64,000 nt of DNA from Octopus sinensis (taxonomy: Eukaryota): positions 74,524,001-74,588,000 of the forward strand of contig NC_043005.1 of the NCBI RefSeq assembly GCF_006345805.1, written 5' to 3'. A program made the position numbers and the translations under genes. A model generated the notes under the pieces. The model worked only from the letters and a program-made list of their open reading frames with translations. It did not search any database and had not been told where the DNA came from. Below are positions 2,900 through 30,943 of this stretch, in pieces (the stretch's first letter is position 1; the number at the start of each line of letters is the position of its first letter).

Positions 2900-3506
2900 T
2901 ATATATATATATATATATATATAAATATATATATTTGGTAGGAATAGATATATTAATATTTGATCCAGCTAAAACAATGCAAAGTGCACTGTGACCAGCA
3001 GTGTATAACAACATCCAGTAGTCTGGTTGATCACACAATCTCACAAGTATAGCTGAAAGACTTCAACTAAAGTAAACCCAAAATAGACTCAGTGGGATGT
3101 GATTGCAATGTAGAACATTGTGAGGGACAGAACAGGTAAAGCAGCTAACGATGATTTGTTCATGAAGAGCCTAATTATGAACTGGTTCAGCTACTCTTAA
3201 CAATTGGATGGGTTTCCTCCAGAAACTGTTCAGCCCCAGTTCAAGTAGACATATGATCAAATACATTCTGGCAATTACGATCCTGTCTTTTTTTCTTTCT
3301 TCTATCAGACACAGTTTACCTAGGATTACATCACTCAACATGTCCTTCCTTCCGTTTCTTTTCTAAGACAGTAGGGTCTTTCCCCTCAATCCTCCACTAA
3401 CTCATTCACACACAAATGCATAAAAATGTTTAACAATAAAGCATTCAACACCGATAACAGAGAACAAAAAAAAAAAGAAAGAAAGAAAGAAAGAAGGAAT
3501 AGATAC

Positions 3507-3622
3507 TCATATTCCACTGCAATAGCACTCTTGGTGGTCTTTGATTTCCTTAACAAATGAAGATGGTGCCATTTATTTATATAATTGGTGACTAGTTCTG
3601 TCAATGTTATTAGAATCCGGCA
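3507..3622 (-). CDS. CENPI: CENP-I exon, last found (CRILITLTELVTNYINKWHHLHLLRKSKTTKSAIAVEY)
   Basis: tattcag|TGC acceptor; the donor GA|gtatct is weaker; 116 nt, phase 0-2. Confidence 0.72.
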
Positions 3623-6600: not shown

Positions 6601-9600
6601 CCCATGCTAGCATGGAAAGCGGACGTTAAACGATGATGATGATATTTCTAATTGTGACCATTCTATTTTATTCTAAGACTTACAATTTATAAGCATATAT
6701 TTCTTTTATCTTTTACTCGTTAGAATGCTGCCATGCAACGGTGCAACCTTGAGAGAAATGGAAACAGCAACACTGCCATAACTTACATGGAAACCACGAA
6801 TGTGCTTTTAAGGGAGGTAAGAGAAACACTTGAAAGTCAATGTAAGATCGTAATACTTCATGTAAAGTAACTATAACAAATAATCCAGAACCTTTGTGTG
6901 TTACAGGATTGATCTCATAATCTAATCAGTTTGCGCCAGTCACGAGACCAAACATCCCTGAAAGTTTCATCTGAATCCATCCAGCAGTTCTTGAGATATC
7001 TTGTCCACAGACAAACAAACAAACACAACTGAAAAACAATACCTCTGCCTTTGCTAAGGCGGACGTAATAACATTAACAATGAAAGCTATAGGGAGACCA
7101 CCAATAAAAAGTTCTCATCTAATTTCAATCAAAGTGATTTACATATCACCATGAATTCAAAAAGCAGTTATCGTTTTTTATTCCATTCCAGAGTTCAGAA
7201 TTAGCTCTTTCATGTCAACAATCTTGTCATTCTCTATTTCTGTCTTTTTTTTGAGGATAATCAAAATATAATAAATATATTATTAGTAAAACATAAATCA
7301 TTAACTATATTTTAAAAACCATACTTACCTGAAAACTTGTGTATTCGGATGTGTGGAATCAATTTAAAAATGGACTGATTAAAATGAAATCCATCCCAAG
7401 TATCAAGGAACTGGTACAGAAAATATTCAATAGCTGGGGTGCCTTCCTGATTGGGGTAGAAATAAAATATAAATGAATTAATTCATTACCATCATGCTAA
7501 AATAATTCTGTAAGAAAAATGCAATAACAAAAAAAAAAGTCTAAATCCACATTCTCCATAAGCCCTGGGGTTGATTTGTCCGACTAAAGGCAGTGCTCCA
7601 GCATGGCCGCAGTCAAAATGACAAACAAATAAAAAAATAAAAGAATCTTGAGCTTGTATAATCAGGACTGACCTAGTGCTCATTCATACAATTCTATAAA
7701 TAAACCTCTTTTAACACTTTTTATTAAAGATTAACCAATCATGAAAAAAAATGAGAAACCTGTTTTTCACCAAACATGTATTACAAAATGATGTTTCGCA
7801 TTGATTATATAAGTTGAAAAATATCTATATATATAAAAGTGAAGTTGTGTGAGTGTCTGTCTCCTACGATTTAGATTCCTAACTACTCCCACATTTTGCG
7901 GTGCAGTTTAACCAAATTCGGGTATCTTATAGTCGTGATTCATATCGAGCCCGTCTGGGTATTAGCGCGCGTCTACGATGAGTCTACAATTTAAAAATAA
8001 TTTAACATCATTTTTTTCCATTTCTTCCAATTTTATCGTGTGTCGATGGCGGCGGAGTTGGCGTCCATGCTCACACCTGCACCCGTGTTGCTTCTCCCCC
8101 CCTCGTGAAGCTGTGGGGAAGGGAGTGTAAGGAAATCAACGTCGTAAAGCGTTGTCAAGGAGACCAGCGTTCTTTTAGAACGACGACTTCATGGCTTGAA
8201 GTCGCCAAAACAGAAATCGCTAAAAAAGCTGAAACAGATCCACAAAAACGGCAAAAACCGCCACACAGGGCAGGTTTCCTGTGCAAACAATTTGCACAAC
8301 CGAATGTTTTAGTTGTTGCACAAATCTTTATATATAAAAGTGAAGTTGTGTGTCTGTCTCCTGCGATTTAGATTCCTAACTACTCCCACATTTTGCGGTG
8401 CAGTTTAACCAAAACCGGGTATCTTATAGTCGTGATTCATATTGAGCCCTTCTGGGTATTAGCGCGCGTCTACGATGAGTCTACGATTTTAAAAATAATT
8501 TAACATCATTTTTTTCCATTTTAATGCATTTTTTTGCTATTATATAAGGGAAGTAACTCTCTAAAAATGTCTACGATGAGTCAACGATTTAAAAAAATTT
8601 ACTATAATTTTTTTGCTATTTTTTGGCTATAACTCTCTAAAAATGCTTTATAGTTATTTCCCTTACAAACCCGAGCAACGCCGGGCGATACTGCTAGTAT
8701 AATATATAAGCAAACGGAAAACAGACACAGAAGGCAACCAAATCCTCATCAGTTATCGCCCAAAGGATCCAATGACGAAAGTGAAGCAAGTTAGCAATAA
8801 CAGTTTTGAAAGGGACGTAACTCTGTGTTAGTCCCTGACTGAACTTAGCAATGTTTCCCTAAGACCACATAAATCTCACCTAACACTTAGAATTTGTCCA
8901 AAGGAAAGAAAAGGGCTGCTCCCCATCTTTCAAATAATAATCTTGAAAGAAAGTAATGAGAGTCATTAAAAAGGAAACGATAATGAATTCAACGTTTTAG
9001 CTTCATTCACTTCTTTCTTCTCTCAACAATTCATTGATGTTGTTTTACTTTAGGTCAGCCTCAGTCCAAAAAAAATCTATAATCAGAGACATTCCATCCT
9101 TGCTCATTTTGAATTTTTAGGGACTTCTAGGACTATATTATCTAATATGACCTATTGGCTTAATATCTCAAGATAATTCATGCAGAAAAACGCTTTGCCA
9201 GAGAGTTGCAGCTCTTGAAATGAAAGATGAAACAAATGTGGAGTGTAGGGGATGAAACACAGCAGATAAATTGCAAGACAATGAGGTACAAATGTTTCAG
9301 TGGGGCTGGCCTGGCTGGAAGGGACCAAGAGTTTGTTCGTTCAGAAAAATTCTTTAAAAACAAAGAAAAAAAGACCTAATTACTTTTCTACTACTGATTA
9401 GGTTTTCCCAACAAAGCAACCCTTCGATGAAAATAATATTTAGCAATTTCTATAATAACAATATACTAGAATATGAAGCACTTCAATTTTTACCAAAAAA
9501 GAAAACAAACCCAGTTGTAGTAAAGGTAGAAGTAGGAAAGGAATGGCCTGGGAGTCCATGGTTGAATTATGGTGATGAATGGGACTTCGTCAATAAGTTT

Positions 9601-12062
9601 TAACTGATTTCCTTTGAGTATGGTCCAAGATGTTTGTACATGTAGCTTCAGCATTGTTCTACGTTGGAGTGGCTGTGTGGTAAGTAGCTTGCTTACCAAC
9701 CACATGGATCTGGGTTCAGTCCCACTGCGTAGCACCTTGAGCAAGTGTCTGCTATTATAGGCTTGGGCCAACCAAAGCCTTGTGAGTGGATTTGGTAGAT
9801 GGAAACTGAAAGAAGCCCGTCGTATATATGTATATATATATATGTGTGTGTGCATATGTTTGTGTCTGTGTTGGTTCCCAAACAAGGCTTGACAACCGAT
9901 GCTGGCGTGTTTATGTCCCAGTAAGTTAGCGGTTCAGCAAAAGAGACTGATAGGCTTACAAAGAATAAGTCCTGGGGTTGATTTGCTCGACTAAAGGCGG
10001 TGCTCCAGCATGGCCACAGTCAAATGACTGAAACAAGTAAAAGAGTATATTGGAGAAGTTCTCTAACATGGGTATTAAGTGAGCTTTATCAAAAGTCAGC
10101 CACTAAATATTCTGACTTCAAAAAGGAAACCTAATATGAGATTGCCACACAAAAGATCATCAATCATAGGTGCAGGTATGGCTGTATGGTAAGAAATTTA
10201 CTTCCCAACAACATGGTTCCAGGTTCAGTCCAACTGCATGGCAGTTTGCACAGGTGTCTTTTACTATAACTCTGAGCTGACCAAAGCCTCGTGATTGAAT
10301 TTGGTAGACAGACACTGAAAAGAAGCATGTCGTATATGTATGTGTGTGTGTTTGTGAATGTGTGCCTTTGTGTCTGTGTTTGTCCCACACCACCTCCTGG
10401 CAACTGATGGTTAGTTTATGTCCTTTCTGTAACTTAGCAGCTCAGAAGTAGACTGATAAAACAAATATATATCTGATTCAGAATGCTTCAAGTTGGTGCC
10501 CCGGCATGGCAGCAATATCTATAATAATAACATTCTACAATATCGAGAACTTTAATTTTTGTCTAAAAAAGAGAAATAACATCAAAAAACAAAGTAATTT
10601 ACAATTATCAAAATCACAGAAAATAAAAAAGGTAAAATAAGTACCTTAGTACGACGCATGAACCCTGCTAACTTTGACAGAAACTCTTCCAGATAATCAT
10701 AATTTGGTACACTGTTTTCTATAAAAGCTGCAGAAGAAAATAAAGCATACTGGATTCAGTAAGAATAAAAATCTGAGATAAGATGGCATACGTATGTACA
10801 CAAATATATATATATACTAGCAGTATCGCCCGGTGTTGCTCGGGTTTGTAAGCGAAATAACTATATAAGCATTTTTAGAGAGTTACTTCCCTTATAGATG
10901 CCAATTCGGGCTTTCTTAGCCATTTCTGTTTTGGTGTCTTCAAGCCATGAAGTCGTTGTTCTAAAAGAACGCTGGTCTCCTTGACAACGCTTTACGACGT
11001 TGATTTCCTTACACTCCCTTCCCCACAGCTTCACGAGGGAGGGAAGAAGGGGGAGAAGCAAACAGGTGCAGATGTGAGCGTGGACGCCAACTCCGCCGTC
11101 ATCGACACACGAAAAATTATGCATTAAAATGGAATAAAAAATGATGTTAAATTATTTTTTAAATCGTAGACTCATCGTAGACGCGCGCTAATACCCAGAC
11201 GGGCTCGATATGAATCACGATTATAAGATACCCAAATTTGGTTAAACTGCATCGCAAAATGTGGGAGTAGTTAGGAATCTAAATCGAAGGGGACAGACAC
11301 TCACACAACTAGTTTTATATATATAGATATACACACACACACACATATATATATATATGTACATACATATGTTAATGGTTGTTTATGTTCATTTATCATG
11401 AAAACAATTTGACATTAATTTGATGGGTTACTTTATACTTCTCTAGAGTACAAATTCATAATTCTTAAACAAGAATACTGTTGACAGAGACTTTGAAGTT
11501 TTGGCCGGTTAAGCCATTGTTGGACTGTCTTATAATAGCTTAACTGACTTAAACTTTGAAATCACTGTCAATAATGTTCTTGCTTAAAAATAATAAGCAC
11601 ATACATTATGGGCCCTCCCTTCATTGGATGACGCATGAGAAGTCAGCCATTTCTAGCTGTAGAACCACACAGGCGACTTGTTTATAGTAAATAAATGTAT
11701 GTGCTGAATATTAGCTCACTCCCTCCATCAAATCGACATACTTGTACAGGTGCACAACATGCCACATGTCAGATGAGGAAATGCTTGCGGAGCAATGTGA
11801 AATGAAGTGTTTTGCTCAAGAATACAATGCCATACTCTTTTACTCTTTTACATGTTTCAGTCATTTGACTGTGGCCATGCTGGAGCACCGCCTTTAGTCC
11901 AGCAAATCGACCCCGGGACTTATTCTCTTGTAAGCCCAGTACTTATTCTATCGGTCTCTTTTGCCGAACCGCTAAGTAACGGGGACGTAAACACACCAGC
12001 ATCAGTTGTCAAGCAATGCTAGGGGGACAAACACAGACACACAAACACATATACACACATAC

Positions 12063-12093
<31 letters not shown>

Positions 12094-12256
12094 CGACAGG
12101 TTTCTTTCAGTTTCTGTCTACCAAATCCACTCACAAGGCATTGGTCGGCCCGGGGCTATAGCAGAAGACACTTGCCCAAGATGCCACGCAGTGGGACTGA
12201 ACCCGGAACCATGTGGTTGGTTAGCAAGCTACTTATCACGCAGCCACTCCTGCACC

Positions 12257-12313
<57 letters not shown>

Positions 12314-12565
12314 TATGTTGGTGCAAACAGGAAAAATATAACTCAAAACATGAGTATATTCTTTCACTCTTTTACTTGTTTTAGTCATTTGACTGTGGCC
12401 ATGCTGAAGCACCATCTTTAGTCGAACACATCAACCCCAAGACTTCTTTGTAAGTCTAGTACTTATTCTATCAGTATCTTTGGCTGAACTGCTAAGTTAC
12501 AGGGGCGTAAACACACCAGCATCAGTTGATTGTTGGGGGACAAACACAGACACACAAACACATAT

Positions 12566-12604
<39 letters not shown>

Positions 12605-15600
12605 ATATATATATATATATATACGAGGGCTTGTTTCAGTTTCCATCTACCAAATCCATTCACAAGGCTTTAGTCGGCCTGAAGCTGCAGTAGAAGACAC
12701 TTGCTCAAGGTGCCATGCAGTATATATTTTATTAATATTTAGCAGAAGCAACAGAATGACTCAAGGTCTGAAAGTTTTTTGCATTGGCATTATCAAACTA
12801 GCTACAGGTTGAAGGTTTGTGTGCTTATATAGCTGCTGATAAATAAAATATAATATTTCCCTATGGAATGTTCTAGAAGAAATTACAAAATGTCATGTGG
12901 ATAATTCAAAAGTTTGTACAATTAGGTCATTCAATAAGCAAATAGATAAATAAGAAAGAAACAAAGTAAAAAGAAAAAAAATATAGTGGCATCATACATG
13001 CATACACACATATACACACACATACCAAAACAAATCCCACAAAATTTGCACATATACATGAGAATGTGCACATGAATTAGGAGTATGGATTTGAGTATGG
13101 ACACACATATACATGCACACGCATGTACACATACATCATCATCGTTTAACATCCGTTTTCCATGCTAGCAAGGGTTGGACAGTTCGACCGGGGTCTGGGA
13201 AGCCAGGAGGCTGCACCAGGCTCCAGTCTGATTTGGCAGTGTTTCTACAGCTGGATGCCCTTCCTAACGCCAACCACTCCGTGAGTGTAGTGGTGCTTTT
13301 TACATGCCACCAGCACAGGTGCCAAGGGAGGCTGGGAACGGCCACGATTGGTTGGTGCTTTTTACGTGCCACCTATATATGTCAATGTGTATGTGCTTAT
13401 GTTTACCAGTCTAAACCCAATGCTGATGTTTCTGTTGCGTCTCTGTCTGTCACCTAACTTAGTGGCTTGAGAATTAGTCAAAATGAACGTCTAAAATCCT
13501 TGAGGGACATGACCCAGAATGGCCACAATCGAAAGACAGAAACCACTGCAAACAAGAACAAAAATGAAAGATGAGACAAAAGTCGTTTTTTTTAAAATTA
13601 CAGTCGTTGCCAGAGCAGCTAACTGGTTTCTGTGCTGATGGCATGTAAAAATGACCATTCGAGCGTGATCGTTACCAGTTCGCCTTACTGGAACTTGTGC
13701 TGGTGCCACGTGAAAAACATTCGAACGACGTCGTTGCCAGTGCCACTGGACTGGCTCCTGTGCAGGTGGCACGTAAAAAGCACCATTTGAGCGTGGCCGT
13801 TACCAGTACTGCCTATCTGGCCCTCGTGCCGGTGGCACGTAAAAGCACCCACTACACCCTCGGAGTGGTTGGCGTTAGGAAGGGCATCCAGCTGTAGAAG
13901 CTCTACCAGATTAGATTGGAGCCTGGTGCAGCCATCTGGTTCGCCAGTCCTCAGTCAAATCGTCCAAACTATGTTAGCATGGAAAGCGGATGTTAAACAA
14001 TGATGATGATGACAGTTAAAGGACTTCAAAGAGATTCCTGTAAAGACTTACCATCATAACAAGTGTGGTAGAGCCACCAATTAAACTGGCCTGTTACATG
14101 TCGGTTTTTGTTGTATGTGATCAGGTACTGAAGCAACGGATTATCAATCACAGAACCAATTTGAATTGGTAGCTACAAATAAAGATTAAAAAAGATAATT
14201 ATAAAATGCCCAAGAGTCACTTGCTGTTTTACAAAACATTGCAATTCTTAACTCTAACAAATGATCTCATGTTATACCACTTACATCTGATGAAAGTTTA
14301 CCTGTAATTATTATTAGATTGCTTTAGATCAGCATTCTTTAAATAAACTCAGGACACAAATAAACACTGTATTTCCCAGTGAATAAGACATGCTTTTTTA
14401 ACAAAAGAAATCTCTGAAAGAGTGACCCCAGGTTCTATATGGGCCTCTCATAAGCTAATTTTGTTCTTGATGCACGCTTTTTCTGAATATTCATAACTGA
14501 GATTAGGGTGTGTCAAATATGCTACTACATCTTTTATGACATCAAAAATGGTATTGTATCAGGTTGGAATGTAAGTTTTATCCAATTTTCTAGATGAAAT
14601 TTTAGATGACATTTATTAAAGTATTGTCTCTTGTTGTCAAGCACAGAATGAAACAACAAGTAATTTATATTTTCTTCTTTCAGGCTAAAAGAATATTGTT
14701 CACTCTTCTCCATGTTCACCCCACATTGTTTGTCCCACCAAAGAACATAGACGTGCTTCAGTCTGAGTTTCATAAGGCATCAATGCGAGTGCAGCAGTAA
14801 AATCCATTCAGAGCACTTATGGAGATGATGTAGTGAACCAAAGAAGTGGCAGGCGATGGTGTTCCTGTTTCTGAAGTGGAAATTTAGCTTATATAATAAG
14901 CCAAATGAGGACTGTCCAGAATATTTTGATTCCCAAGTGTTGGATGATGTTATCACAGCAAATTCTGCCCCTAGTGCTAGGGATCTCAAGAAATTTAAAG
15001 TAAGCCATACGACTATCCTACACAAACTGAAAAGAATTGGCTTATGATCCATCAGAAGTTATGAATAGGGATCACATATCTTAGGACTTTGTTATCCAGC
15101 ATAAAATAACCCCCACACATTATACATGTCTTACATTATTTATTGACTGTGTTATCTTTAAGAAACATTTGTTAATTACCTAAATCAGTGATTCTCACAT
15201 AAGGTTTATTTAATCAAAATGGGAAGGAAAATAAGGAAAAAAAGCTGCTCTTACTTGAATTTGATCGATATACCGAAGAAGGTCTTCAAATGTCAGTATC
15301 CTGTGGAATGAAACTGTTTCAGGAAAGTGGTCCTGCCTCACATATGAGAAGTTGGTACATAATCATTTATTGAAGATTGAACCTGAGGAATTAATTTACT
15401 CAGTTTGGCTTTCTTTCGAACCTGAAAGACAAGACAATGATATTATTTCACTTTAAGAGAGGTTGGGGTCCACCAAGGTTCAGTCCTCAGCCTCCTCCTA
15501 TTTATCATAGTCCTCCAAGCAATAATGGAGGAATTCAAGACAGATCCCCTGGGAGCTCCTCTATGCTGATGACCTTGCTCTAATTGCTGAGTCACTATCA

Positions 15601-18328
15601 GAACTTGAGGAGAAGTTTCAGTGAAAAGGACACAACTAAAGTTGTAACATTCCTCTTAAATATTTATGGCAGTGGATCTCAAGTGGGGTCCATATGAGAT
15701 TTTGTTCATGAAAAAAAATCATGTGAATTAATTGGTTATATTTCTATAATAACACAAAATATTTTAATATCTTTTATATAATTCCAAATAATATTTAATT
15801 ATAAAAATATAAATTGTTTTTAAACATAGAGAAACATTATAAAAATATATAAACATATTTTAAACAATAGGCGCAGGAGTGATTGTGTGGTAAGTAGCTT
15901 GCTTACCAACCACATGGTTCCGGGTTCAGTCCCACTGCGTGGTGCCTTGGGCCGACCAAAGCCTTGTGAGTGGATTTGGTAGAGGGAAACTGAAAGAAGC
16001 CCGTTGTATGTATGTATATACATATGTGTTTGTCCCCACCAACATCGCTTGACAACTGATGCTGGTGTGTTTACATCCCTATAACTTAGCGGTTCAGCAA
16101 AAGAGCCCAATAGAATAATTACAAGGCTTACAAAGAATAAGTCCTGGAGTCGATTTGCTCGACTAAAGGCGGTCCTCCAGCATGGCCACAGTCAAATGAC
16201 TGAAATAAGCAAAAGAGTAAATATATATACACACACACAACACACACATTAGATATACATTCATACAAGTGTTGCATATGCACATATATATCATCATCAT
16301 CGTTTAACGTCCGTTCTCCATGCTAGCATGGGTTGGACGGTTCGACCGGGGATCTGGGAAGCCAGAAGGCTGCACCAGGCTCCAGTCTTATCTGGCAATG
16401 TTTCTACAGCTAGATGCCCTTCCTAACGCCAACCACTCCGTGAGTGTAGTGGGTGCTTTTTATGTGCCACCTGCACAGGTGCCAGGCGAGGCTAGCAACG
16501 GCCACGGTCGGATTGGTGTATTTTACGTGCCACCGGCACGGAAGCCAGTCGAGACAGCGCTGGCATCGGCCACGAGTCGGATAGTGCTTTTTACGTACCA
16601 TCAGACCAGGGATCCTGGCTGGTTCAATTCGATTTCGATTCGATTTCGCTTGCCCCAACATGTCTTCGCAAGCAAAGAGGTTTGGCATGGGTGCCTGTCG
16701 TCGGATGAGGTTCTATATCGACTTCGCTTGCCTCAACAGGTCTTTGTGTCCAAGGGAGGAAAGGCATGCATAAGTGGGCTGGGCTCACTTGTCCTGCCTG
16801 GTCTTCTCACGTACAGCATATTTCCAAATATGCTATACACACAGGTTATATATACAGGTTATATATACATATACACATATATGCTGGCATGGCGCCATGT
16901 AATGTGTATGAATGAAGATGGTTGCATGAAAAGGTGTTGGTCTCTAATTATAGAGGGAACGTGTAAAAAGAGTAGACCCAGGAAGATGTGGGATAAAGTA
17001 GTGAGAAAGTATCTACGAACGTTGGGACTTACAGAAGGGATGACAGGGGAGTGAGACTCTAGGTTTGTTGCATTTGAAAAGACACATCAAGCTAAGTAAA
17101 AACGTGGTTGCCCTTGCATGCAGCTTGTCGCCTGCATCCCTCTCTAGTTGAGCATTCCAAACTTTGCAGTCTGGTAGGTGCTGGTGCCATGAAGAAAGTA
17201 CCCATATCGGTACCACATAATGCACCCATGCTGGTGCTGCTTTGTTTGTTTGTTTGTTGAGCGAAGCGTTCTTCGTCCCAGAGCTCGCAAGATCGCCCCT
17301 CAGGATTGTCTGTAGTCGGAGAAGTAAGAAACGTGGTCCTTTGCTATTCATAAGACCTGCAGAAGAGAAAGCAGGTCAACCCCCGACACCGAGAGAATCG
17401 ACGGATAGATGAATGCGCATCCAGGCTCAGCGGCTGCGTAGGAAGTCGGGGACAAGAAACAGGAAGAAAGAATGAGAGAAAGTTGGAGCAAAAGAGTACA
17501 ACAGGGGTCGCCACCACCCCTTGCCGGAGCCTCGTGGTGCTTTAGGTGTTTTCGCTCAATAAACACACACAACGCCCGGTCTGGGAATCGAAACCGCGAT
17601 CCTCCGACCGCAAGTCCGCTGCCCTAACCACTGGGCCCTTGCGCCTCCACTGCTGGTGCTGCTTAAAAGCACCCAGTACACTCTGTAATGTTAGGAAGGG
17701 TATCCAGCCATAGAAAGCATGCCAAACAGAGGTTAAATGATGATGATAGCAGAAGGCAATAATACAGTGAGACAAGACATGTGGGTAGGAGATGCACAGG
17801 TCGGGGGCAAGCAGAGAGCAATGATACAGTGGCACCGAGCCAAGAAGATAAGATCAGGGAGTAGGAAGTAATCATAGTACATGAAACAGAAATGTGAGGA
17901 AGAGATGTAAGTTCGCACAAGTTACTTTCTTTTAAAAAGTATTTGTTTTAAATCGAAGATTTATGTATGTGCTGAATATTAGCTCACTCCCTCCATCAAA
18001 TCGACATACTTGTACAGGTGCACAACATGCCACATGTCAGATGAGGAAATGCTTGCGGAGCAATGTGAAATGAAGTGTTTTGCTCAAGAATACAATGCCA
18101 TACTCTTTTACTCTTTTACATGTTTCAGTCATTTGACTGTGGCCATGCTGGAGCACCGCCTTTAGTCGCGCAAATCAACCCGGGACTTATTCTCTTGTAA
18201 GCCCAGTACTTATTCTATCGGTCTCTTTTGCCGAACCGCTAAGTAACGGGGACGTAAACACACCAGCATCAGTTGTCAAGCAATGCTAGGGGGACAAACA
18301 CAGACACACAAACACATATAACACATAC

Positions 18329-18359
<31 letters not shown>

Positions 18360-18532
18360 CGACAGGTTTCTTTCAGTTTCTGTCTACCAAATCCACTCAC
18401 AAGGCATTGGTCGGCCCGGGGCTATAGCAGAAGACACTTGCCCAAGATGCCACGCAGTGGGACTGAACCCGGAACCATGTGGTTGGTTAGCAAGCTACTT
18501 ATCACGCAGCCACTCCTGCACCATGTATATAT

Positions 18533-18582
<50 letters not shown>

Positions 18583-18848
18583 TATGTTGGTGCAAACAGG
18601 AAAAATATAACTCAAAACATGAGTATATTCTTTCACTCTTTTACTTGTTTTAGTCATTTGACTGTGGCCATGCTGAAGCACCATCTTTAGTCGAACACAT
18701 CAACCCCAAGACTTCTTTGTAAGTCTAGTACTTATTCTATCAGTATCTTTGGCTGAACTGCTAAGTTACAGGGGCGTAAACACACCAGCATCAGTTGATT
18801 GTTGGGGGACAAACACAGACACACAAATACATAAACACAGACATACAT

Positions 18849-18898
<50 letters not shown>

Positions 18899-21800
18899 GA
18901 GGGCTTGTTTCAGTTTCCATCTACCAAATCCATTCACAAGGCTTTAGTCGGCCTGAAGCTGCAGTAGAAGACACTTGCTCAAGGTGCCATGCAGTATATA
19001 TTTTATTAATATTTAGCAGAAGCAACAGAATGACTCAAGGTCTGAAAGTTTTTTGCATTGGCATTATCAAACTAGCTACAGGTTGAAGGTTTGTGTGCTT
19101 ATATAGCTGCTGATAAATAAAATATAATATTTCCCTATGGAATGTTCTAGAAGAAATTACAAAATGTCATGTGGATAATTCAAAAGTTTGTACAATTAGG
19201 TCATTCAATAAGCAAATAGATAAATAAGAAAGAAACAAAGTAAAAAGAAAAAAAATATAGTGGCATCATACATGCATACACACATATACACACACATACC
19301 AAAACAAATCCCACAAAATTTGCACATATACATGAGAATGTGCACATGAATTAGGAGTATGGATTTGAGTATGGACACACATATACATGCACACGCATGT
19401 ACACATACATCATCATCGTTTAACATCCGTTTTCCATGCTAGCAAGGGTTGGACAGTTCGACCGGGGTCTGGGAAGCCAGGAGGCTGCACCAGGCTCCAG
19501 TCTGATTTGGCAGTGTTTCTACAGCTGGATGCCCTTCCTAACGCCAACCACTCCGTGAGTGTAGTGGTGCTTTTTACATGCCACCAGCACAGGTGCCAAG
19601 GGAGGCTGGGAACGGCCACGATTGGTTGGTGCTTTTTACGTGCCACCTATATATGTCAATGTGTATGTGCTTATGTTTACCAGTCTAAACCCAATGCTGA
19701 TGTTTCTGTTGCGTCTCTGTCTGTCACCTAACTTAGTGGCTTGAGAATTAGTCAAAATGAACGTCTAAAATCCTTGAGGGACATGACCCAGAATGGCCAC
19801 AATCGAAAGACAGAAACCACTGCAAACAAGAACAAAAATGAAAGATGAGACAAAAGTCGTTTTTTTTAAAATTACAGTCGTTGCCAGAGCAGCTAACTGG
19901 TTTCTGTGCTGATGGCATGTAAAAATGACCATTCGAGCGTGATCGTTACCAGTTCGCCTTACTGGAACTTGTGCTGGTGCCACGTGAAAAACATTCGAAC
20001 GACGTCGTTGCCAGTGCCACTGGACTGGCTCCTATGCAGGTGGCACGTAAAAAGCACCATTTGAGCGTGGCCGTTACCAGTACTGCCTATCTGGCCCTCA
20101 TGCCGGTGGCACGTAAAAGCACCCACTACACCCTCGGAGTGGTTGGCGTTAGGAAGGGCATCCAGCTGTAGAAGCTCTACCAGATTAGATTGGAGCCTGG
20201 TGCAGCCATCTGGTTCGCCAGTCCTCAGTCAAATCGTCCAAACTATGTTAGCATGGAAAGCGGATGTTAAACAATGATGATGATGACAGTTAAAGGACTT
20301 CAAAGAGATTCCTGTAAAGACTTACCATCATAACAAGTGTGGTAGAGCCACCAATTAAACTGGCCTGTTACATGTCGGTTTTTGTTGTATGTGATCAGGT
20401 ACTGAAGCAACGGATTATCAATCACAGAACCAATTTGAATTGGTAGCTACAAATAAAGATTAAAAAAGATAATTATAAAATGCCCAAGAGTCACTTGCTG
20501 TTTTACAAAACATTGCAATTCTTAACTCTAACAAATGATCTCATGTTATACCACTTACATCTGATGAAAGTTTACCTGTAATTATTATTAGATTGCTTTA
20601 GATCAGCATTCTTTAAATAAACTCAGGACACAAATAAACACTGTATTTCCCAGTGAATAAGACATGCTTTTTTAACAAAAGAAATCTCTGAAAGAGTGAC
20701 CCCAGGTTCTATATGGGCCTCTCATAAGCTAATTTTGTTCTTGATGCACGCTTTTTCTGAATATTCATAACTGAGATTAGGGTGTGTCAAATATGCTACT
20801 ACATCTTTTATGACATCAAAAATGGTATTGTATCAGGTTGGAATGTAAGTTTTATCCAATTTTCTAGATGAAATTTTAGATGACATTTATTAAAGTATTG
20901 TCTCTTGTTGTCAAGCACAGAATGAAACAACAAGTAATTTATATTTTCTTCTTTCAGGCTAAAAGAATATTGTTCACTCTTCTCCATGTTCACCCCACAT
21001 TGTTTGTCCCACCAAAGAACATAGACGTGCTTCAGTCTGAGTTTCATAAGGCATCAATGCGAGTGCAGCAGTAAAATCCATTCAGAGCACTTATGGAGAT
21101 GATGTAGTGAACCAAAGAAGTGGCAGGCGATGGTGTTCCTGTTTCTGAAGTGGAAATTTAGCTTATATAATAAGCCAAATGAGGACTGTCCAGAATATTT
21201 TGATTCCCAAGTGTTGGATGATGTTATCACAGCAAATTCTGCCCCTAGTGCTAGGGATCTCAAGAAATTTAAAGTAAGCCATACGACTATCCTACACAAA
21301 CTGAAAAAAATTGGCTTATGATCCATCAGAAGTTATGAATAGGGATCACATCATATCTTAGGACTTTGTTATCCAGCATAAAATAACCCCCACACATTAT
21401 ACATGTCTTACATTATTTATTGACTGTGTTATCTTTAAGAAACATTTGTTAATTACCTAAATCAGTGATTCTCACATAAGGTTTATTTAATCAAAATGGG
21501 AAGGAAAATGAGGAAAAAAAGCTGCTCTTACTTGAATTTGATCGATATACCGAAGAAGGTCTTCAAATGTCAGTATCCTGTGGAATGAAACTGTTTCAGG
21601 AAAGTGGTCCTGCCTCACAATATGAGAAGTTGGTACATAATCATTTATTGAAGATTGAACCTGAGGAATTAATTTACTCAGTTTGGCTTTCTTTCGAACC
21701 TGAAAGACAAGACAATGATATTATTTCACTTTAAGAGAGGTTGGGGTCCACCAAGGTTCAGTCCTCAGCCTCCTCCTATTTATCATAGTCCTCCAAGCAA

Positions 21801-24642
21801 TAATGGAGGAATTCAAGACAGGATCCCCTGGGAGCTCCTCTATGCTGATGACCTTGCTCTAATTGCTGAGTCACTATCAGAACTTGAGGAGAAGTTTCAG
21901 TGAAAAGGACACAACTAAAGTTGTAACATTCCTCTTAAATTATTTATGGCAGTGGATCTCAAGTGGGGTCCATATGAGATTTTGTTCATGAAAAAAAATC
22001 ATGTGAATTAAATTGGTTATATTTCTATAATAACACAAAATATTTTAATATCTTTTATATAATTCCAAATAATATTTAATTATAAAAATATAAATTGTTT
22101 TTAAACATAGAGAAACATTATAAAAATATATAAACATATTTTAAACAATAGGCGCAGGAGTGATTGTGTGGTAAGTAGCTTGCTTACCAACCACATGGTT
22201 CCGGGTTCAGTCCCACTGCGTGGTGCCTTGGGCCGACCAAAGCCTTGTGAGTGGATTTGGTAGAGGGAAACTGAAAGAAGCCCGTTGTATGTATGTATAT
22301 ACATATGTGTTTGTCCCACCAACATCGCTTGACAACTGATGCTGGTGTGTTTACATCCCTATAACTTAGCGGTTCAGCAAAAGAGCCCAATAGAATAATT
22401 ACAAGGCTTACAAAGAATAAGTCCTGGAGTCGATTTGCTCGACTAAAGGCGGTCCTCCAGCATGGCCACAGTCAAATGACTGAAATAAGCAAAAGAGTAA
22501 ATATATATACACACACACAACACACACATTAGATATACATTCATACAAGTGTTGCATATGCACATATATATCATCATCATCGTTTAACGTCCGTTCTCCA
22601 TGCTAGCATGGGTTGGACGGTTCGACCGGGGATCTGGGAAGCCAGAAGGCTGCACCAGGCTCCAGTCTTATCTGGCAATGTTTCTACAGCTAGATGCCCT
22701 TCCTAACGCCAACCACTCCGTGAGTGTAGTGGGTGCTTTTTATGTGCCACCTGCACAGGTGCCAGGCGAGGCTAGCAACGGCCACGGTCGGATTGGTGTA
22801 TTTTACGTGCCACCGGCACGGAAGCCAGTCGAGACAGCGCTGGCATCGGCCACGAGTCGGATAGTGCTTTTTACGTACCATCAGACCAGGGACCCTGGCT
22901 GGTTCAATTCGATTTCGATTCGATTTCGCTTGCCCCAACATGTCTTCGCAAGCAAAGAGGTTTGGCATGGGTGCCTGTCGTCGGATGAGGTTCTATATCG
23001 ACTTCGCTTGCCTCAACAGGTCTTTGTGTCCAAGGGAGGAAAGGCATGCATAAGTGGGCTGGGCTCACTTGTCCTGCCTGGTCTTCTCATGTACAGCATA
23101 TTTCCAAATATGCTATACACACAGGTTATATATACAGGTTATATATACATATACACATATATGCTGGCATGGCGCCATGTAATGTGTATGAATGAAGATG
23201 GTTGCATGAAAAGGTGTTGGTCTCTAATTATAGAGGGAACATGTAAAAAGAGTAGACCCAGGAAGATGTGGGATAAAGTAGTGAGAAAGGATCTATGAAC
23301 GTTGGGACTTACAGAAGGGATGACAGGGGAGTGAGACTCTAGGTTTGTTGCACTTGAAAAGACACATCAAGCTAAGTAAAAACGTGGTTGCCCTTGCATG
23401 CAGCTTGTCGCCTGCATCCCTCTCTAGTTGAGCATTCCAAACTTTGCAGTCTGGTAGGTGCTGGTGCCATGAAGAAAGTACCCATATCGGTACCACATAA
23501 TGCACCCATGCTGGTGCTGCTTTGTTTGTTTGTTTGTTGAGCAAAGCGTTCTTCGTCCCAGAGCTCGCAAGATCGCCCCTCAGGATTGTCTGTAGTCGGA
23601 GAAGTAAGAAACGTGGTCCTTTGCTATTCATAAGACCTGCAGAAGAGAAAGCAGGTCAACCCCCGACACCGAGAGAATCGACGGATAGATGAATGCGCAT
23701 CCAGGCTCAGCGGCTGCGTAGGAAGTCGGGGACAAGAAACAGGAAGAAAGAATGAGAGAAAGTTGGAGCAAAAGAGTACAACAGGGGTCGCCACCACCCC
23801 TTGCCGGAGCCTCGTGGTGCTTTAGGTGTTTTCGCTCAATAAACACACACAACGCCCGGTCTGGGAATCGAAACCGCGATCCTCCGACCGCAAGTCCGCT
23901 GCCCTAACCACTGGGCCCTTGCGCCTCCACTGCTGGTGCTGCTTAAAAGCACCCAGTACACTCTGTAATGTTAGGAAGGGTATCCAGCCATAGAAAGCAT
24001 GCCAAACAGAGGTTAAATGATGATGATAGCAGAAGGCAATAATACAGTGAGACAAGACATGTGGGTAGGAGATGCACAGGTCGGGGGCAAGCAGAGAGCA
24101 ATGATACAGTGGCACCGAGCCAAGAAGATAAGATCAGGGAGTAGGAAGTAATCATAGTACATGAAACAGAAATGTGAGGAAGAGATGTAAGTTCGCACAA
24201 GTTACTTTCTTTTAAAAAGTATTTGTTTTAAATCGAAGATTTATGTATGTGCTGAATATTAGCTCACTCCCTCCATCAAATCGACATACTTGTACAGGTG
24301 CACAACATGCCACATGTCAGATGAGGAAATGCTTGCGGAGCAATGTGAAATGAAGTGTTTTGCTCAAGAATACAATGCCATACTCTTTTACTCTTTTACA
24401 TGTTTCAGTCATTTGACTGTGGCCATGCTGGAGCACCGCCTTTAGTCGCGCAAATCAACCCCGGGACTTATTCTCTTCTAAGCCCAGTACTTATTCTATT
24501 GGTCTCTTTTGCCGAACCGCTAAGTAACGGGGACGTAAACACACCAGCATCGGTTGTCAAGCAATACTAGGGGGACAAACACAGACACACAAACACATAC
24601 ATATATATACGACAGGCTTCTTTCAGTTTCCGTCTACCAAAT

Positions 24643-24681
<39 letters not shown>

Positions 24682-24848
24682 AGAAAAAAACTTACAGGAC
24701 TTTTAGCAGATTTGTATGCTAAATTCCTTAATTCCAATCCCCTTCGTAGCTGAACACCTTGGATTATCTTTTGCAATCTTTGGTTTGGTATTCTATAAAA
24801 ACACTGAAAAGTAGAATAGAGAGCAACACCACCAACAATAATAATAAT

Positions 24849-24883
<35 letters not shown>

Positions 24884-27622
24884 CAATAACAATGGTTTCA
24901 AATTTTGGCACAAGGGCATCAATTTTAGTGGGAGTGGGTAAGTTGATTACATCCACCCTAGTGCTAAGCTGGTGCTTATTTTATTAATGCTGAAAGGACG
25001 AAAGACAAAGTTGACTTTAGATGAATTTGAACTCGGAACTTAAAAGGTAGGCAATTGGTAAGCATTTTGTCCATTGCCTAATGTTTCAGTAAGCATGTCT
25101 ATAGCATGCTTACTATTATTTGAAAAATTAACTAGCCTCATAGAAGATGAATTGCATAGCTTCCTGGAGAAGATAAAGGGATGCAGAAAGATGTCAAAGG
25201 GCACTAAATCAGCTGTATATCGATAGCATGATATTAAATTGATGTATGAATAAGAACACAGTTGTTGGTTGTATAACAAACTTGGGATGTGAAGAGACAG
25301 GAGAAATACCATTAAGCATCTCACCTGGCATGCAAGCAATTCTGTTAGTTACTTGCCTGATAATAAATGACAGTAATAATACGAGGGTAATCCCAAAAGT
25401 AAGGTCTCCAAAGTGCTGGCGACGCAGGGAAACTGTATGTGCAGCTATTGGCAACACTGTTGTGTTTGTTGTGCATGCGTTTGCCCCCTGTGTGCACCTC
25501 GCTGCCACACGCAGTCCTGGCTTGACAGTCTTATCTGATGGAGCTCCCCATCGACACTACTGCCAAGTGTGAAGTTCGTGCAGTTATTTGGTTTTTGAAT
25601 GCAAAAGGCATTAAACTGATTGAAATTCATCACCAATTTATGGAAGTGTATGGTGAGTTGTGCATGGTAGTCAAAAACGTCTGCAAGTGGTGTAGGGAGT
25701 TTGCAGCTGGTTGTACTGAAATTCAGGACAAAGTAAGAAGTGGGCGACCATCAATTTCTGATGAAACAGTTGCAAAGGTTGAGTAAATCCTGCGTGAAAA
25801 TCAGCGGATCACTCTGGATGATCTCCCCATTTTGGTTCCTAAGGTTTTCCGAAGCACCATTCATAGGGTTTTGAGTGAAAATTTGCAATACCAGGTGTGC
25901 ACAAGATGGGTCCCATGAATGCTCACAGAAGGCCATAAATGGCAACCCACCTTATAGTCCGGACTTGGTACCCAGTGACTACCACCTGTTCCTTAAGTTG
26001 TAAGAACATTTAGCTGGAACACGCTTCAGCAATGACAACGAGGTGAAAGATAAGGTTCAACACTTCCTTAAAGACATGGCGGTGAGCTAGTATGACGTGG
26101 GCATACAAAAACTGCCCCAGCGCCTACAAAGGGCGATTATGTAGAAAAATAGATAAATGTTCAAACTTTAAAATGATGTAAACATCCTGGACAAACATTA
26201 CTGTGATTTCTAAATATTTTTGGAGACCTTACTTTTGGGATTGCCCTTGTATTTATGTATATATTTCAGGCCATGCTGTTTGCAGCTTTGTGTAATAATA
26301 CTCTCTTTATTACATAAGTAAGACTGATAGTAAAAAAAAAAAAGGAAAAAAAAAAAAATAATAATTACTTGATATTTTGGAAGTGACAGCCCTAATTTAT
26401 CAGGCCGCAGCATCTTATATTTCGTCAGTAAACCAATTAATGAAGGGACATTCCCCTGAAAAGATAAAACATCAAATGAGAAAAAGATATATAATTTACA
26501 TTCATTAATATTGAGTCCAGTTTGGAATGAAGGCAGCAGAAATGAAAATAAGGATCTTAGAACTTATATAATGAAGATACTGATTACTGGGGTAGACAGT
26601 TTCAGTCTATGATGTGTGACAGAGTAAAGTGCCTTCATTGTAAACATAGAGCAGTAATGCTTACAGAGTATAAACTCTGACTCTTGAGCTGGTTGACAAG
26701 ATATCATACTGACAACAGAACCATATTAACTCTTGCAAACCATATTAACTGTAAAGCATTCAAAGGAGTTGAATCAAGCATGGAGAAGTCAACATTAAAA
26801 TGATGATGATGATAGTCAGATAGGCAGATGGATATAGATATGCTTAGTAAATACAAAATTGGAACTGTTTATGATGCTAATCTCATATATGCTGTGTCAG
26901 TGTAGCAGTTTATTAGTACGCTCAACCACTCTAGCAACATTTATGTAAATTAGGTCAGGTCTGGTTCAGTCAGTGGTGCACACTTTTGTGTCTCAGTAAA
27001 CAAGTAATCAAACCCTGACGATGGCTTTAACAAAAGCTGAAACTAATCGATTAATTAACTCGATCCTTCTCACTGGCTGTCAAAAGGCCTATGATTTAAC
27101 CAAGAGACCAATTGTCTTGGTAATAATTTTGTTATTCTAGCACACGCACAAATATAGAACTGCACAAATAGTCTGTATGTTTGATTTTTGTACATTTCAG
27201 TTTTTCTGAAATTCAAAGAAGAGGAATATCAAGTCAAAGAGACAAATCTCAGGAATGACATACACACAAACATCACTAATCCAAACACTGAACTACTAAG
27301 AACATTAATCAAATGAACCAAACCTTAAGGAATACCTGTTCACATTTAACTGTACAAGCAGGTCAGTGTTTTGCCATGCTAGTACTGGTTAAACATATAT
27401 ATGACTGAGGCATTGTTTTACAGTTGGATGCCCTTCCTGTCACTAACCCTTAGGTGATTTGCAAGTAAAGCATCGCTTATATCAAATGACTTTGAAAGAA
27501 CAAAGTAACAAGCAATTTGTTTACAGAAGTGACAACACAGTTTGAACAATCACAGATACATACTTACAAATGTGTGTGAGTGCGAGAGAGGGAAGAGGAG
27601 AGTGAAAGTTCATGGATAAAAT

Positions 27623-27656
<34 letters not shown>

Positions 27657-27657
27657 A

Positions 27658-27724
<67 letters not shown>

Positions 27725-30803: not shown

Positions 30804-30843
30804 CTGAATGAGATCACAACTAATTCGAATTCCTTATAAGGAA

Positions 30844-30943
30844 NNNNNNNNNNNNNNNNNNNNNNNNNNNNNNNNNNNNNNNNNNNNNNNNNNNNNNNNN
30901 NNNNNNNNNNNNNNNNNNNNNNNNNNNNNNNNNNNNNNNNNNN
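30844..30943. other. Assembly gap (100 N)
   Basis: Run of exactly 100 N, a common placeholder for a gap of unknown size. Confidence 0.99.

Follow-up and report, generated by a model that had tools for sequence, protein, structure and literature searches.

A tandem duplication of two exons in a CENP-I paralogue of the Octopus sinensis reference assembly and its possible origin by unequal exchange

We analyzed a stretch of Octopus sinensis chromosome CM016867.1 (GCA_006345805.1; about 74.52-74.59 Mb), 64 kb in length and referred to as the window. On its minus strand lies a CENP-I gene in which two exons, VRKK and LPIQ, each occur twice; no coding gene is modeled by NCBI over this part of the window. 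The two duplicated exons together encode 96 amino acids (aa) that match Pfam PF07778 at 30.3 bits (cut-off 23, profile positions 295-389), and a spliced product of 163 aa aligned with human CENP-I (PDB 7PKN chain I, residues 341-467) at an E-value of 3.8e-12 in a single, collinear alignment without repetition. P0001 and P0116, the full models, likewise contain PF07778. Pfam scans of tiled minus-strand open reading frames (ORFs) detected one exon downstream of the duplicated array and none upstream of it. Close relatives were recovered by exhaustive HMMER search; a homologue search by another method with the 96-aa exon peptide returned 0 matches. The exons and the neighboring gap, in the direction of transcription, are as follows.

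30844-30943: scaffold gap of 100 N, 11 nt upstream of the exon for aa 79-122
30832-30702, minus strand: exon for aa 79-122, with A-paralogue-like sequence
29522-29415, 28004-27909 and 26455-26369, minus strand: three more upstream exons
24696-24803, minus strand: exon just upstream of the array, aa 220-255, with its donor site 44 bp from the array end
21532-21699, minus strand: upstream copy of the VRKK exon (VRKK_2), 168 nt, phase 0-0, intact
20326-20446, minus strand: upstream copy of the LPIQ exon (LPIQ_2), 121 nt, phase 0-1
15255-15421, minus strand: downstream copy of the VRKK exon (VRKK_1), 167 nt, frameshifted
14052-14172, minus strand: downstream copy of the LPIQ exon (LPIQ_1), identical to LPIQ_2
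10645-10727, minus strand: first exon downstream of the array, aa 352-379, 83 nt, phase 1-0
7329-7446, minus strand: exon for aa 380-418, 118 nt, phase 0-1, Pfam CENP-I profile positions 423-462
4760-4824, minus strand: exon for aa 419-441
3504-3622, minus strand: exon for aa 442 to about 480, borders approximate

The gene is cut by the N-gap, with exons 1-2 (aa 1-78) missing from the window, and its C-terminal exons lie outside the window, past the left edge (P0128).

This gene is paralogue B of a head-to-head CENP-I pair common to O. sinensis and Octopus vulgaris. The O. vulgaris A/B pair is located on OX597823.1 at 79.73-79.79 Mb, and the orthologues of the two species cluster by paralogue. 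The same layout is expected for the O. sinensis locus once correctly scaffolded. Paralogue B evolves faster than paralogue A and contains patches of A-like sequence. The possibility that P0001 and P0116 are alleles in a fold-back contig was rejected because the O. vulgaris chromosome has the same pair and the orthologues group by paralogue. The two diverging head-to-head genes in both species are the more interesting biology at this locus, and the pair is relevant to the evolution of kinetochore proteins. A previous reading of the window from its sequence only had taken the gene as the essential CENP-I of the organism, but it is the faster-evolving member of a pair found in both species. The presence of a presumably redundant paralogue removes the objection that a real duplication would damage an essential gene, and regulated skipping of the extra exons is not needed.

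The duplication was seen as a direct repeat of positions 11695-18318 and 17963-24599 with 99.38% identity (22 mismatches and 13 gap openings in 6,640 columns), for which chance cannot be the source. No further repeats of at least 300 bp with at least 93% identity were found in the 64-kb window. The array consists of the following elements.

11695-24651: whole tandem array, A1-X1-A2-X2-A3, 2.07 units of 6,268-6,280 bp (~6.27 kb)
11695-12135, plus strand: boundary element A1, comprising 144 bp limited to the three boundaries (11695-11838), then the start of a dispersed SINE (from 11839)
12136-17962: unit body X1
17963-18401, plus strand: junction element A2, an in-register A3/A chimera
18402-24242: unit body X2
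24243-24651, plus strand: A3, a truncated 409-bp copy of A

The 6.3-kb tandem duplication of two CENP-I exons, as described by the sequence-only reading, is thus present in the deposited sequence. Its proposed span of 11695-24242 does coincide with the array but is too short, since the partial third copy of the boundary element extends the array to 24651. That third copy, the chimeric junction, and the gene-truncating N-gap 6.2 kb away had all been overlooked. The gap at 30844-30943 is the sole run of N in the window; there is none between the two copies, which are joined by continuous sequence, and the sequence is clean for 700 bp to each side of A2. A1 and the left flank meet at a native junction, as the two are contiguous in O. 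vulgaris; the right junction of A3 falls within CACA microhomology with a (CA)n tract.

AG/GT borders were found throughout for VRKK_2, LPIQ_2, LPIQ_1, and the exon at 10727-10645, and the splice sites with their 25-nt contexts are identical and intact in both exon copies. The VRKK copies differ by nothing except a 1-bp deletion in VRKK_1 (CATATTGTG to CATATGTG, plus strand 15341/15342), with which the copy reads ...PTSHM followed by a stop. This deletion is private to X1. The lengths and phases reported before (VRKK, 168 nt, phase 0-0; LPIQ, 121 nt, phase 0-1) are accurate for the upstream copies, but VRKK_1 is 167 nt, as the deletion at 15341/15342 had been missed and the downstream exon taken as 168 nt. 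Splicing of all four exons ends in a stop after ...HTCYDGSKESQTE, and the predicted premature stop on linear splicing (G|GT TCG AAA GAA AGC CAA ACT GAG TAA) was re-derived and is correct. Two skips, 21532 to 14172 and 20326 to 10727, each restore the frame and yield the annotated B-type protein; regulated skipping itself is unsupported, given the second paralogue and the identical splice sites.

The unit was next compared with other representations of the locus. Two unplaced contigs of the same assembly, VCDQ01001672.1 and VCDQ01001647.1, match the window at 99.5-100% identity and contain the unit once, as A-X-A3, that is, with X flanked by 0.4-kb direct repeats; A and A3 are about 98% identical. 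O. vulgaris has one unit and no A3, with 11 bp at the A3 site, and A3 is common to all three O. sinensis versions. Since the unit is single in two contigs and in O. vulgaris, the duplication is a single-allele variant or an assembly error rather than a special gene design. The left flank shows three differences in 11.3 kb between the window and the single-copy contigs. Among the three versions, 16 substitutions are found in 5.8 kb, all within the array, and 0 in the neighboring 7.2 kb (left) and 2.3 kb (right). Such confinement to the array is what paralogous divergence would give; in alleles it would be coincidental.

To type the junction element, we scored A2 against left-type and right-type copies, three of each. 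Offsets 207 and 215 of A2 are A3-type, and every fixed marker from offset 235 onward is left-type; this places the exchange interval at 18178-18196, with a private 1-bp deletion at 18178. A2 alone combines A at 18177 with G at 18197, reading AAATCAACCC(C)GGGACTTATTCTCTTG; the left-type version is ...AAATCGACCCC...CTTG and the right-type version is ...AAATCAACCCC...CTTC. Two marks of nonallelic homologous recombination (NAHR), direct flanking repeats in the unduplicated state and an in-register hybrid at the junction, are present. A 'star' model, in which three A copies arose at once and later gained private mutations, was rejected because the A3-type differences are common to all three A3s and A2 switches type once. 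Independent SINE insertions as the source of A1 and A3 were likewise rejected: the first 144 bp occur only at the boundaries, and the copies are ~98% alike compared with 69-88% for other members of the family. Comparison with O. vulgaris indicates that A3 is the later, templated copy. Rfam gave no match over 9-27 kb, including for the SINE. Exact-ORF look-ups with A2-, X1-, and X2-specific ORFs returned no records, an absence that is uninformative.

The two unit bodies differ in their private events. X2 has four private events and is nearly identical to the X of both single-copy contigs. X1 has 20 private events relative to X2 and both single-copy contigs, including 13 substitutions, nine of which are derived relative to O. 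vulgaris and mark X1 as a distinct lineage; three other derived substitutions are common to X2, L002, and L005. CpG transitions make up about half of the X1/X2 differences, indicating that these differences are biological and not read errors. Four 1-bp homopolymer deletions private to X1 (15341, 15542, 15660, and 15729) form a cluster with 0 substitutions between them and are most likely residual long-read consensus errors. Every variable site in the four X sequences is biallelic. Substitutions alone give a perfect tree, whereas the addition of indel and microsatellite sites gives incompatible splits, and the AABB and ABAB patterns are mutually incompatible. In a runs test by blocks, computed by hand, z was about -2.5 to -3. 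Every pattern can arise from mosaic contigs, so that the site patterns are compatible with alleles as well as with paralogues. The contigs are mosaics of each other, and the X1 alleles are on neither single-copy contig. At the position corresponding to 11891, both contigs have a private T, and they carry X2-type alleles no more than 0.4-0.9 kb from the left flank.

The explanation that we favor, and to which we assign an even chance, is a real tandem duplication by unequal exchange on at least one O. sinensis haplotype, producing a disabled allele of the redundant paralogue B. The ancestral state would have been L-A-X-R, as retained in O. vulgaris. The next step, in the lineage of O. sinensis, would have been the insertion of A3, a 409-bp copy of A, at the X/R border with replacement of 11 bp. 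This event resembles a template switch with CACA microhomology at one junction and would have left the two exons between 0.4-kb direct repeats. An in-register unequal homologous exchange of A3 with A could subsequently have produced L-A1-X1-A2-X2-A3-R with A2 as the hybrid, and we infer that this exchange occurred in the animal and is not a product of the assembler. The precursor A-X-A3 on two contigs and the pre-A3 state in O. vulgaris support unequal exchange. Because both exon pairs have identical and intact splice sites, default splicing is expected to include all four exons, adding 288-289 nt and placing a stop far upstream of the last junction. Nonsense-mediated decay would be expected to remove such a transcript. 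The allele would be loss-of-function or leaky, and CENP-I would come from paralogue A, paralogue B being redundant and fast-evolving.

Almost as probable as a real duplication is a false one, in an assembly that is redundant and locally mis-scaffolded. The unit may, with an appreciable though less than even probability, be single in the genome (A-X-A3), two read sets or haplotypes having been strung in tandem through the A/A3 repeat, for example by contig merging, gap closing, or joining at a contig-end overhang; X1 and X2 would then be alleles or mosaic consensus sequences. The sequence-only reading had named a loss-of-function allele and a false duplication as its fallback options, and these are the two leading readings here. 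That two of the three representations are single-copy and otherwise near-identical to the window counts against a real duplication. So do the poor assembly of the locus and its surroundings: the array lies 6.2 kb from a contig end at the gene-truncating N-gap, the stretch from A2 to the gap is just 12.7 kb, the final 120 bp before the gap match paralogue A, and the A fragment is 630 kb away behind another gap. The O. sinensis assembly has 5.2% duplicated BUSCOs compared with 0.4-0.5% in relatives (PMC10700109), which also counts against a real duplication. The cluster of four 1-bp deletions in X1, like the deletion inside the 20-bp interval where A2 changes type, resembles consensus sequence with poor support; false duplications accompany locally raised heterozygosity and erroneous k-mers (PMC9516828). 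Biallelic sites with incompatible AABB and ABAB patterns are expected of mosaics of two haplotypes, a model that may hold here, and NCBI coding annotation is absent over this part.

Several observations argue against an artifact. Overlaps of at most 409 bp are shorter than those on which long-read assemblers join sequences, and an in-register join on such an overlap is an unlikely product of long-read assembly. Haplotypes that are 0.28% apart would normally be collapsed by noisy long reads, not separated. The limits of the heterozygosity would also need to fall no more than about 200 bp from the array ends, next to flanks that show none. In addition, the artifact requires an X1-type right end joined to A3-R, which is on no contig. 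No gap interrupts the two copies, and the sequence around A2 is clean. Ko et al. 2022 (PMC9516828) described a true tandem duplication that was allele-specific and lay within a single contig, whereas in most of the false ones in that study a gap separated the copies.

The favored explanation, a real duplication by unequal exchange, includes as a subset with a different zygosity the case that the duplication is fixed or homozygous in O. sinensis, with the unplaced contigs collapsed and paralogue B a pseudogene in the making; we regard this case as unlikely. Collapse of a two-copy, 6.3-kb tandem repeat with 99.7% identity is a common error in long-read assembly and could explain the single-copy contigs. 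All substitutions within X proper are X1-versus-X2 differences, of which the contigs carry one or the other state, and, as the flanks lack heterozygosity, a duplication this old (divergence 0.28%) would be expected on each of the two haplotypes. The faster evolution of B than of A points in the same direction. However, two independent collapses would be needed, and the contigs have the private T at 11891 and X2-type alleles near the left flank, where flank-anchored reads should be X1-type. It is improbable that a real, high-frequency or fixed duplication represents ongoing disabling or splicing-dependent remodeling of a young, fast-evolving CENP-I paralogue, which in this reading arose head-to-head before the O. 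vulgaris/O. sinensis split and still swaps sequence patches with its partner. Finally, a real duplication with a functional gene maintained by regulated or constitutive skipping of one exon pair, a new CENP-I alternative-splicing module, is highly improbable: both routes are in frame to the exact B-type protein and the VRKK_1 deletion would make copy 1 a dead exon that needs skipping, but nothing in the identical splice contexts directs a choice, the deletion sits in a cluster of probable consensus errors, a second paralogue makes rescue unneeded, the duplication is absent from O. vulgaris and two O. sinensis contigs, and, unlike in known mutually exclusive exon arrays, the 289-nt unit is not a multiple of 3, with LPIQ copies that are identical and VRKK copies that are nearly so.

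The value of these results is mostly practical. The O. sinensis reference misrepresents the CENP-I locus here, with a gap-truncated gene, its partner 630 kb away, two duplicating contigs, and a putative exon duplication, and inferences about gene families or loss of function from this stretch are unsafe. If real, the array would be a clean natural example of exon duplication in two steps, in which a templated 0.4-kb insertion provides the direct repeats for unequal exchange. If the duplication were fixed or at high frequency, it would represent a birth-and-death episode of an inner-kinetochore gene in cephalopods.

Alu-mediated exon duplications are known in human disease genes, including BRCA1, LDLR, and the partial tandem duplication of KMT2A. 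The octopus array resembles these in several ways: two introns contain direct repeats a few hundred base pairs long, the junction carries a hybrid repeat formed in register, whole exons lie head-to-tail, and the frame shifts to a premature stop if the summed exon length is not divisible by 3. It differs in that the repeat does not stem from two separate SINE insertions; an element 5.9 kb away was the template for a 409-bp copy, made up of 144 unique bp and a portion of a SINE. The affected gene is a presumably redundant paralogue, and the germ-line origin is putative. Lineage-specific paralogues of centromere and kinetochore genes are found in Drosophila, as in Cid (CENP-A) and Cenp-C, where a kinetochore component likewise exists as two diverging paralogues, one of them faster; the octopus pair, by contrast, concerns CENP-I, is arranged head to head, and has A-like patches in B. 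Mutually exclusive exons of the Dscam type are also tandem exon copies within one gene, but there each copy is one exon, all are of the same length and preserve the frame, and the copies differ in sequence and are retained in different species, whereas the octopus unit comprises two exons of 289 nt in near-identical copies that are not kept even in the sister species. Lastly, false heterotype or under-collapsed duplications (Ko et al. 2022, PMC9516828) share with this locus a near-identical intragenic duplicate that creates false exons, a redundant assembly, a nearby contig end, and extra indel errors in one copy; the octopus copies differ from them in adjoining without a gap at a repeat-mediated, in-register junction.

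A self-comparison of the window aligned 11695-18318 with 17963-24599 at 99.38% identity (6640 columns, 22 mismatches, 13 gap openings), and the tandem duplication of two CENP-I exons described in the sequence-only reading is thus present in the deposited sequence. Within the window, no second long high-identity repeat was found besides this array. When the three unit borders were aligned with one another, homology set in sharply at 11695, 17963, and 24243. The array starts at 11695, as previously proposed, but does not end at 24242: because the border element recurs a third time, truncated, as far as 24651, the layout is A1-X1-A2-X2-A3 (A, border elements; X, unit bodies) over 11695-24651, or 2.07 units. 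Element A comprises 144 bp unique to the three borders and the start of a SINE present at least 12 times in the window (69-88% identity). ORFs at 16320-17054, 22600-23298, and 29113-29271 close with a ...RPRK(M/T)WD.VV...LGL motif of the kind that some retrotransposon proteins have at their C-terminus. O. vulgaris paralogue B shares the GC-rich right end of the unit (16.6-18.1 kb), to which nothing corresponds at the paralogue A locus.

Both duplicated exons scored over the cut-off for Pfam CENP-I/Mis6, and the spliced four-exon peptide aligned collinearly, once only, with human CENP-I from solved CCAN structures. An exhaustive HMMER search retrieved P0001, 'centromere protein I-like' of Octopus sinensis (518 aa, 93% identical). 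The CENP-I-like proteins of this species are of two types about 90% identical, A (P0001, P0118) and B (P0116, P0126); the window gene is B. The gene model, on the minus strand, was built by mapping P0001 onto the window.

Exons of the window gene
30832-30702, 29522-29415, 28004-27909, 26455-26369, 24803-24696, minus: exons upstream of the array (P0001 mapping)
21699-21532, minus: VRKK_2, upstream copy, 168 nt, canonical AG/GT borders
20446-20326, minus: LPIQ_2, upstream copy, 121 nt, canonical AG/GT borders
14172-14052, minus: LPIQ_1, downstream copy, canonical AG/GT borders
10727-10645, minus: next exon after the array, 83 nt, entry phase 1, canonical AG/GT borders
7446-7329, 4824-4760, about 3622-3504, minus: further exons downstream, which with 10727-10645 come from the P0001 mapping

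When P0001 was mapped onto the window, residues 1-78 (exons 1-2) had no counterpart, and upstream of the aa 79-122 exon just 11 nt of contig remain before the window's single 100-N gap (30844-30943). Of this gene on CM016867.1, NCBI modelled no more than P0128, a 186-aa C-terminal fragment starting about 350 bp past the window's left edge. The 518-aa NCBI models (P0001, P0116, P0126) end in ...NELVED, an intron read-through after the exon at ~3622-3504 (3389-3643), since their contigs go no further; P0118 and P0128 have the true C-terminus.

Linear splicing of all four duplicated exons gives ...HTCYDGSKESQTE*, confirming the predicted premature stop. VRKK_1, however, is 167 nt long and not 168 nt, a 1-bp deletion (CATATTGTG to CATATGTG) having been overlooked; its reading ends ...PTSHM*, so copy 1 is not usable alone. 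The frame stays open with one exon pair only (VRKK_2-LPIQ_2 to 10727, or VRKK_2 to LPIQ_1) and is lost when all four exons are skipped.

Single-unit versions are found on two of the assembly's unplaced contigs. VCDQ01001672.1 (72.9 kb, B arm) matched 30843-17963 at 99.30% and 18401-397 at 99.58% and contains A-X-A3 once (6694 bp), as does VCDQ01001647.1 (107.6 kb). Beyond the array, very little separates the three versions: window and VCDQ01001672.1 differ at 3 positions in 11.3 kb of left flank and share long runs at 100.000% on the right. Dense patches (4148-4519, 26925-27784, 29516-29780, 30526-30826) diverge by 3-7% over 100-400 bp, with kilobases of perfect identity between; the deviating version may be any of the three, and some alleles are A-paralogue-type. 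The VCDQ01001647.1 patch at 4148-4519 had no match among the sequences compared.

In O. vulgaris the unit is single and A3 is missing, 24663 meeting 24240 across about 10 bp; the empty site there (23791-23802 of that locus) runs from the X end through GGATACAAGAA into (CA)n. In place of those 11 bp, O. sinensis has A3 (24243-24651), a 409-bp copy of an A element 5.9 kb away, and the right junction of A3 shows CACA microhomology. A3 looks like a small template-switch-type insertion, and it made NAHR-prone direct repeats around the two exons. Since O. vulgaris lacks A3 and the single-unit contigs have A-X-A3 once, the series would run from L-A-X-R (L and R, flanks), by gain of A3, to L-A-X-A3-R, and by in-register exchange of A3 with A to L-A1-X1-A2-X2-A3-R. 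Markers were restricted to positions splitting all left-type copies (window and both contigs) from all right-type copies. A2 is right-type at offsets 207 and 215 and left-type at every marker from 235, which places the exchange at 18178-18196, where A2 carries a private 1-bp deletion. This pattern is the product expected of such an exchange.

With the border elements excluded, 16 substitutions separate X1 from X2, roughly half being CpG transitions, along with microsatellite and 1-bp indels. Against the single-unit contigs, which differ by 2 SNPs, X1 has 20 private events and X2 has 4. With O. vulgaris as outgroup, derived substitutions number nine private to X1, three common to X2 and both contigs, two shared by X2 and VCDQ01001647.1, and two in X2 alone. 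A cluster of four 1-bp deletions (15341-15729), one of which is the exon frameshift, occurs in X1 alone; these resemble consensus errors. Exact-ORF look-ups aimed at independent read assemblies gave no exact matches.

That the duplication is real on at least one haplotype is about an even call; within this reading, homozygosity or fixation is unlikely. The common repeat is shorter than long-read overlaps require, and haplotypes just 0.28% apart are usually merged when long reads are noisy. The repeat-mediated junction has no gap and is in register, its precursor state is present in the same species, and the sparse variation is limited to the array, adjacent flanks of 7.2 kb and 2.3 kb being without substitutions. 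Ko et al. (PMC9516828) describe one true allele-specific tandem duplication that lies inside a contig, whereas most of the false ones there have a gap between copies.

An assembly artefact is a plausible explanation, though short of probable. Two of the three versions are single-copy, the contig ends 6.2 kb from the array, and apparent indel errors occur in one copy and in the junction itself. The contigs are demonstrably mosaic, so the biallelic site patterns are compatible with two haplotypes. The assembly contains redundancy, with 5.2% of BUSCOs duplicated versus 0.4-0.5% in relatives (PMC10700109): the two unplaced contigs, both starting at the equivalent of 397, repeat 30 kb of the window (397-30843) at 99.5-100%, which is redundant sequence kept in the assembly.

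It is also mis-scaffolded at this locus. By an exact match of 100 nt, the window belongs to chromosome CM016867.1 (GCA_006345805.1). About 630 kb from it, within CM016867.1 73,832,299-73,897,357, an A-type fragment sits on the same strand and starts directly after a 100-N gap (30203-30302 of that interval), with its VRKK exon 0.9 kb downstream of the gap; the local scaffold is therefore scrambled. The mismatch with the adjacent head-to-head layout elsewhere points to mis-scaffolding, and the middle of the A/B pair is found on unplaced contigs only. A 2443-aa VWD/C8/TIL gene model covers the entire region, suggesting placement of the CENP-I contig within the bounds of that gene. This large, mucin- or hemolectin-like gene lies at 33400-58400 (minus strand), its NCBI model spanning the whole CENP-I fragment. 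An imperfect CA-rich simple repeat of about 850 bp at 51100-52000 is strongly strand-asymmetric (50-52 kb bin: GC skew +0.26, AT skew -0.29).

A functional design rescued by splicing is very improbable, as the premise of an essential single CENP-I fails because paralogue A exists, and the extra exon copy is neither a conserved nor a regulated feature. Real or artefact alike, the two exons are single in the canonical B gene of O. sinensis. A real duplication would be an ordinary repeat-mediated one, disabling or weakening one allele of a redundant gene; a false one would be another error in a difficult locus. Separately, an Acipenser sinensis CENP-I model (P0002, MGH0182930.1, 992 aa, UNVERIFIED_CONTAM) has a homologous ~120-aa block three times in frame, probably an assembly problem too.

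The A and B genes lie head to head on both unplaced contigs, and the same arrangement of the pair occurs on O. vulgaris chromosome OX597823.1. Orthologues group by type (A-A 98%, B-B 96.7%, A-B about 90%), and the A/B duplication is therefore older than the O. vulgaris/O. sinensis split. The window gene is B-type from residue 123 onward, with an A-type exon for aa 79-122; the final ~120 bp up to the gap (30720-30826) match paralogue A, but not B, exactly and represent a chimeric consensus or else a gene-conversion tract. The single annotated CENP-I of O. bimaculoides shows mostly A states (10 A and 2 B at 17 fixed A/B differences), so B is the faster-evolving copy. The specialist interest lies in this head-to-head CENP-I pair, its fast-evolving B copy, and the swapped sequence patches.
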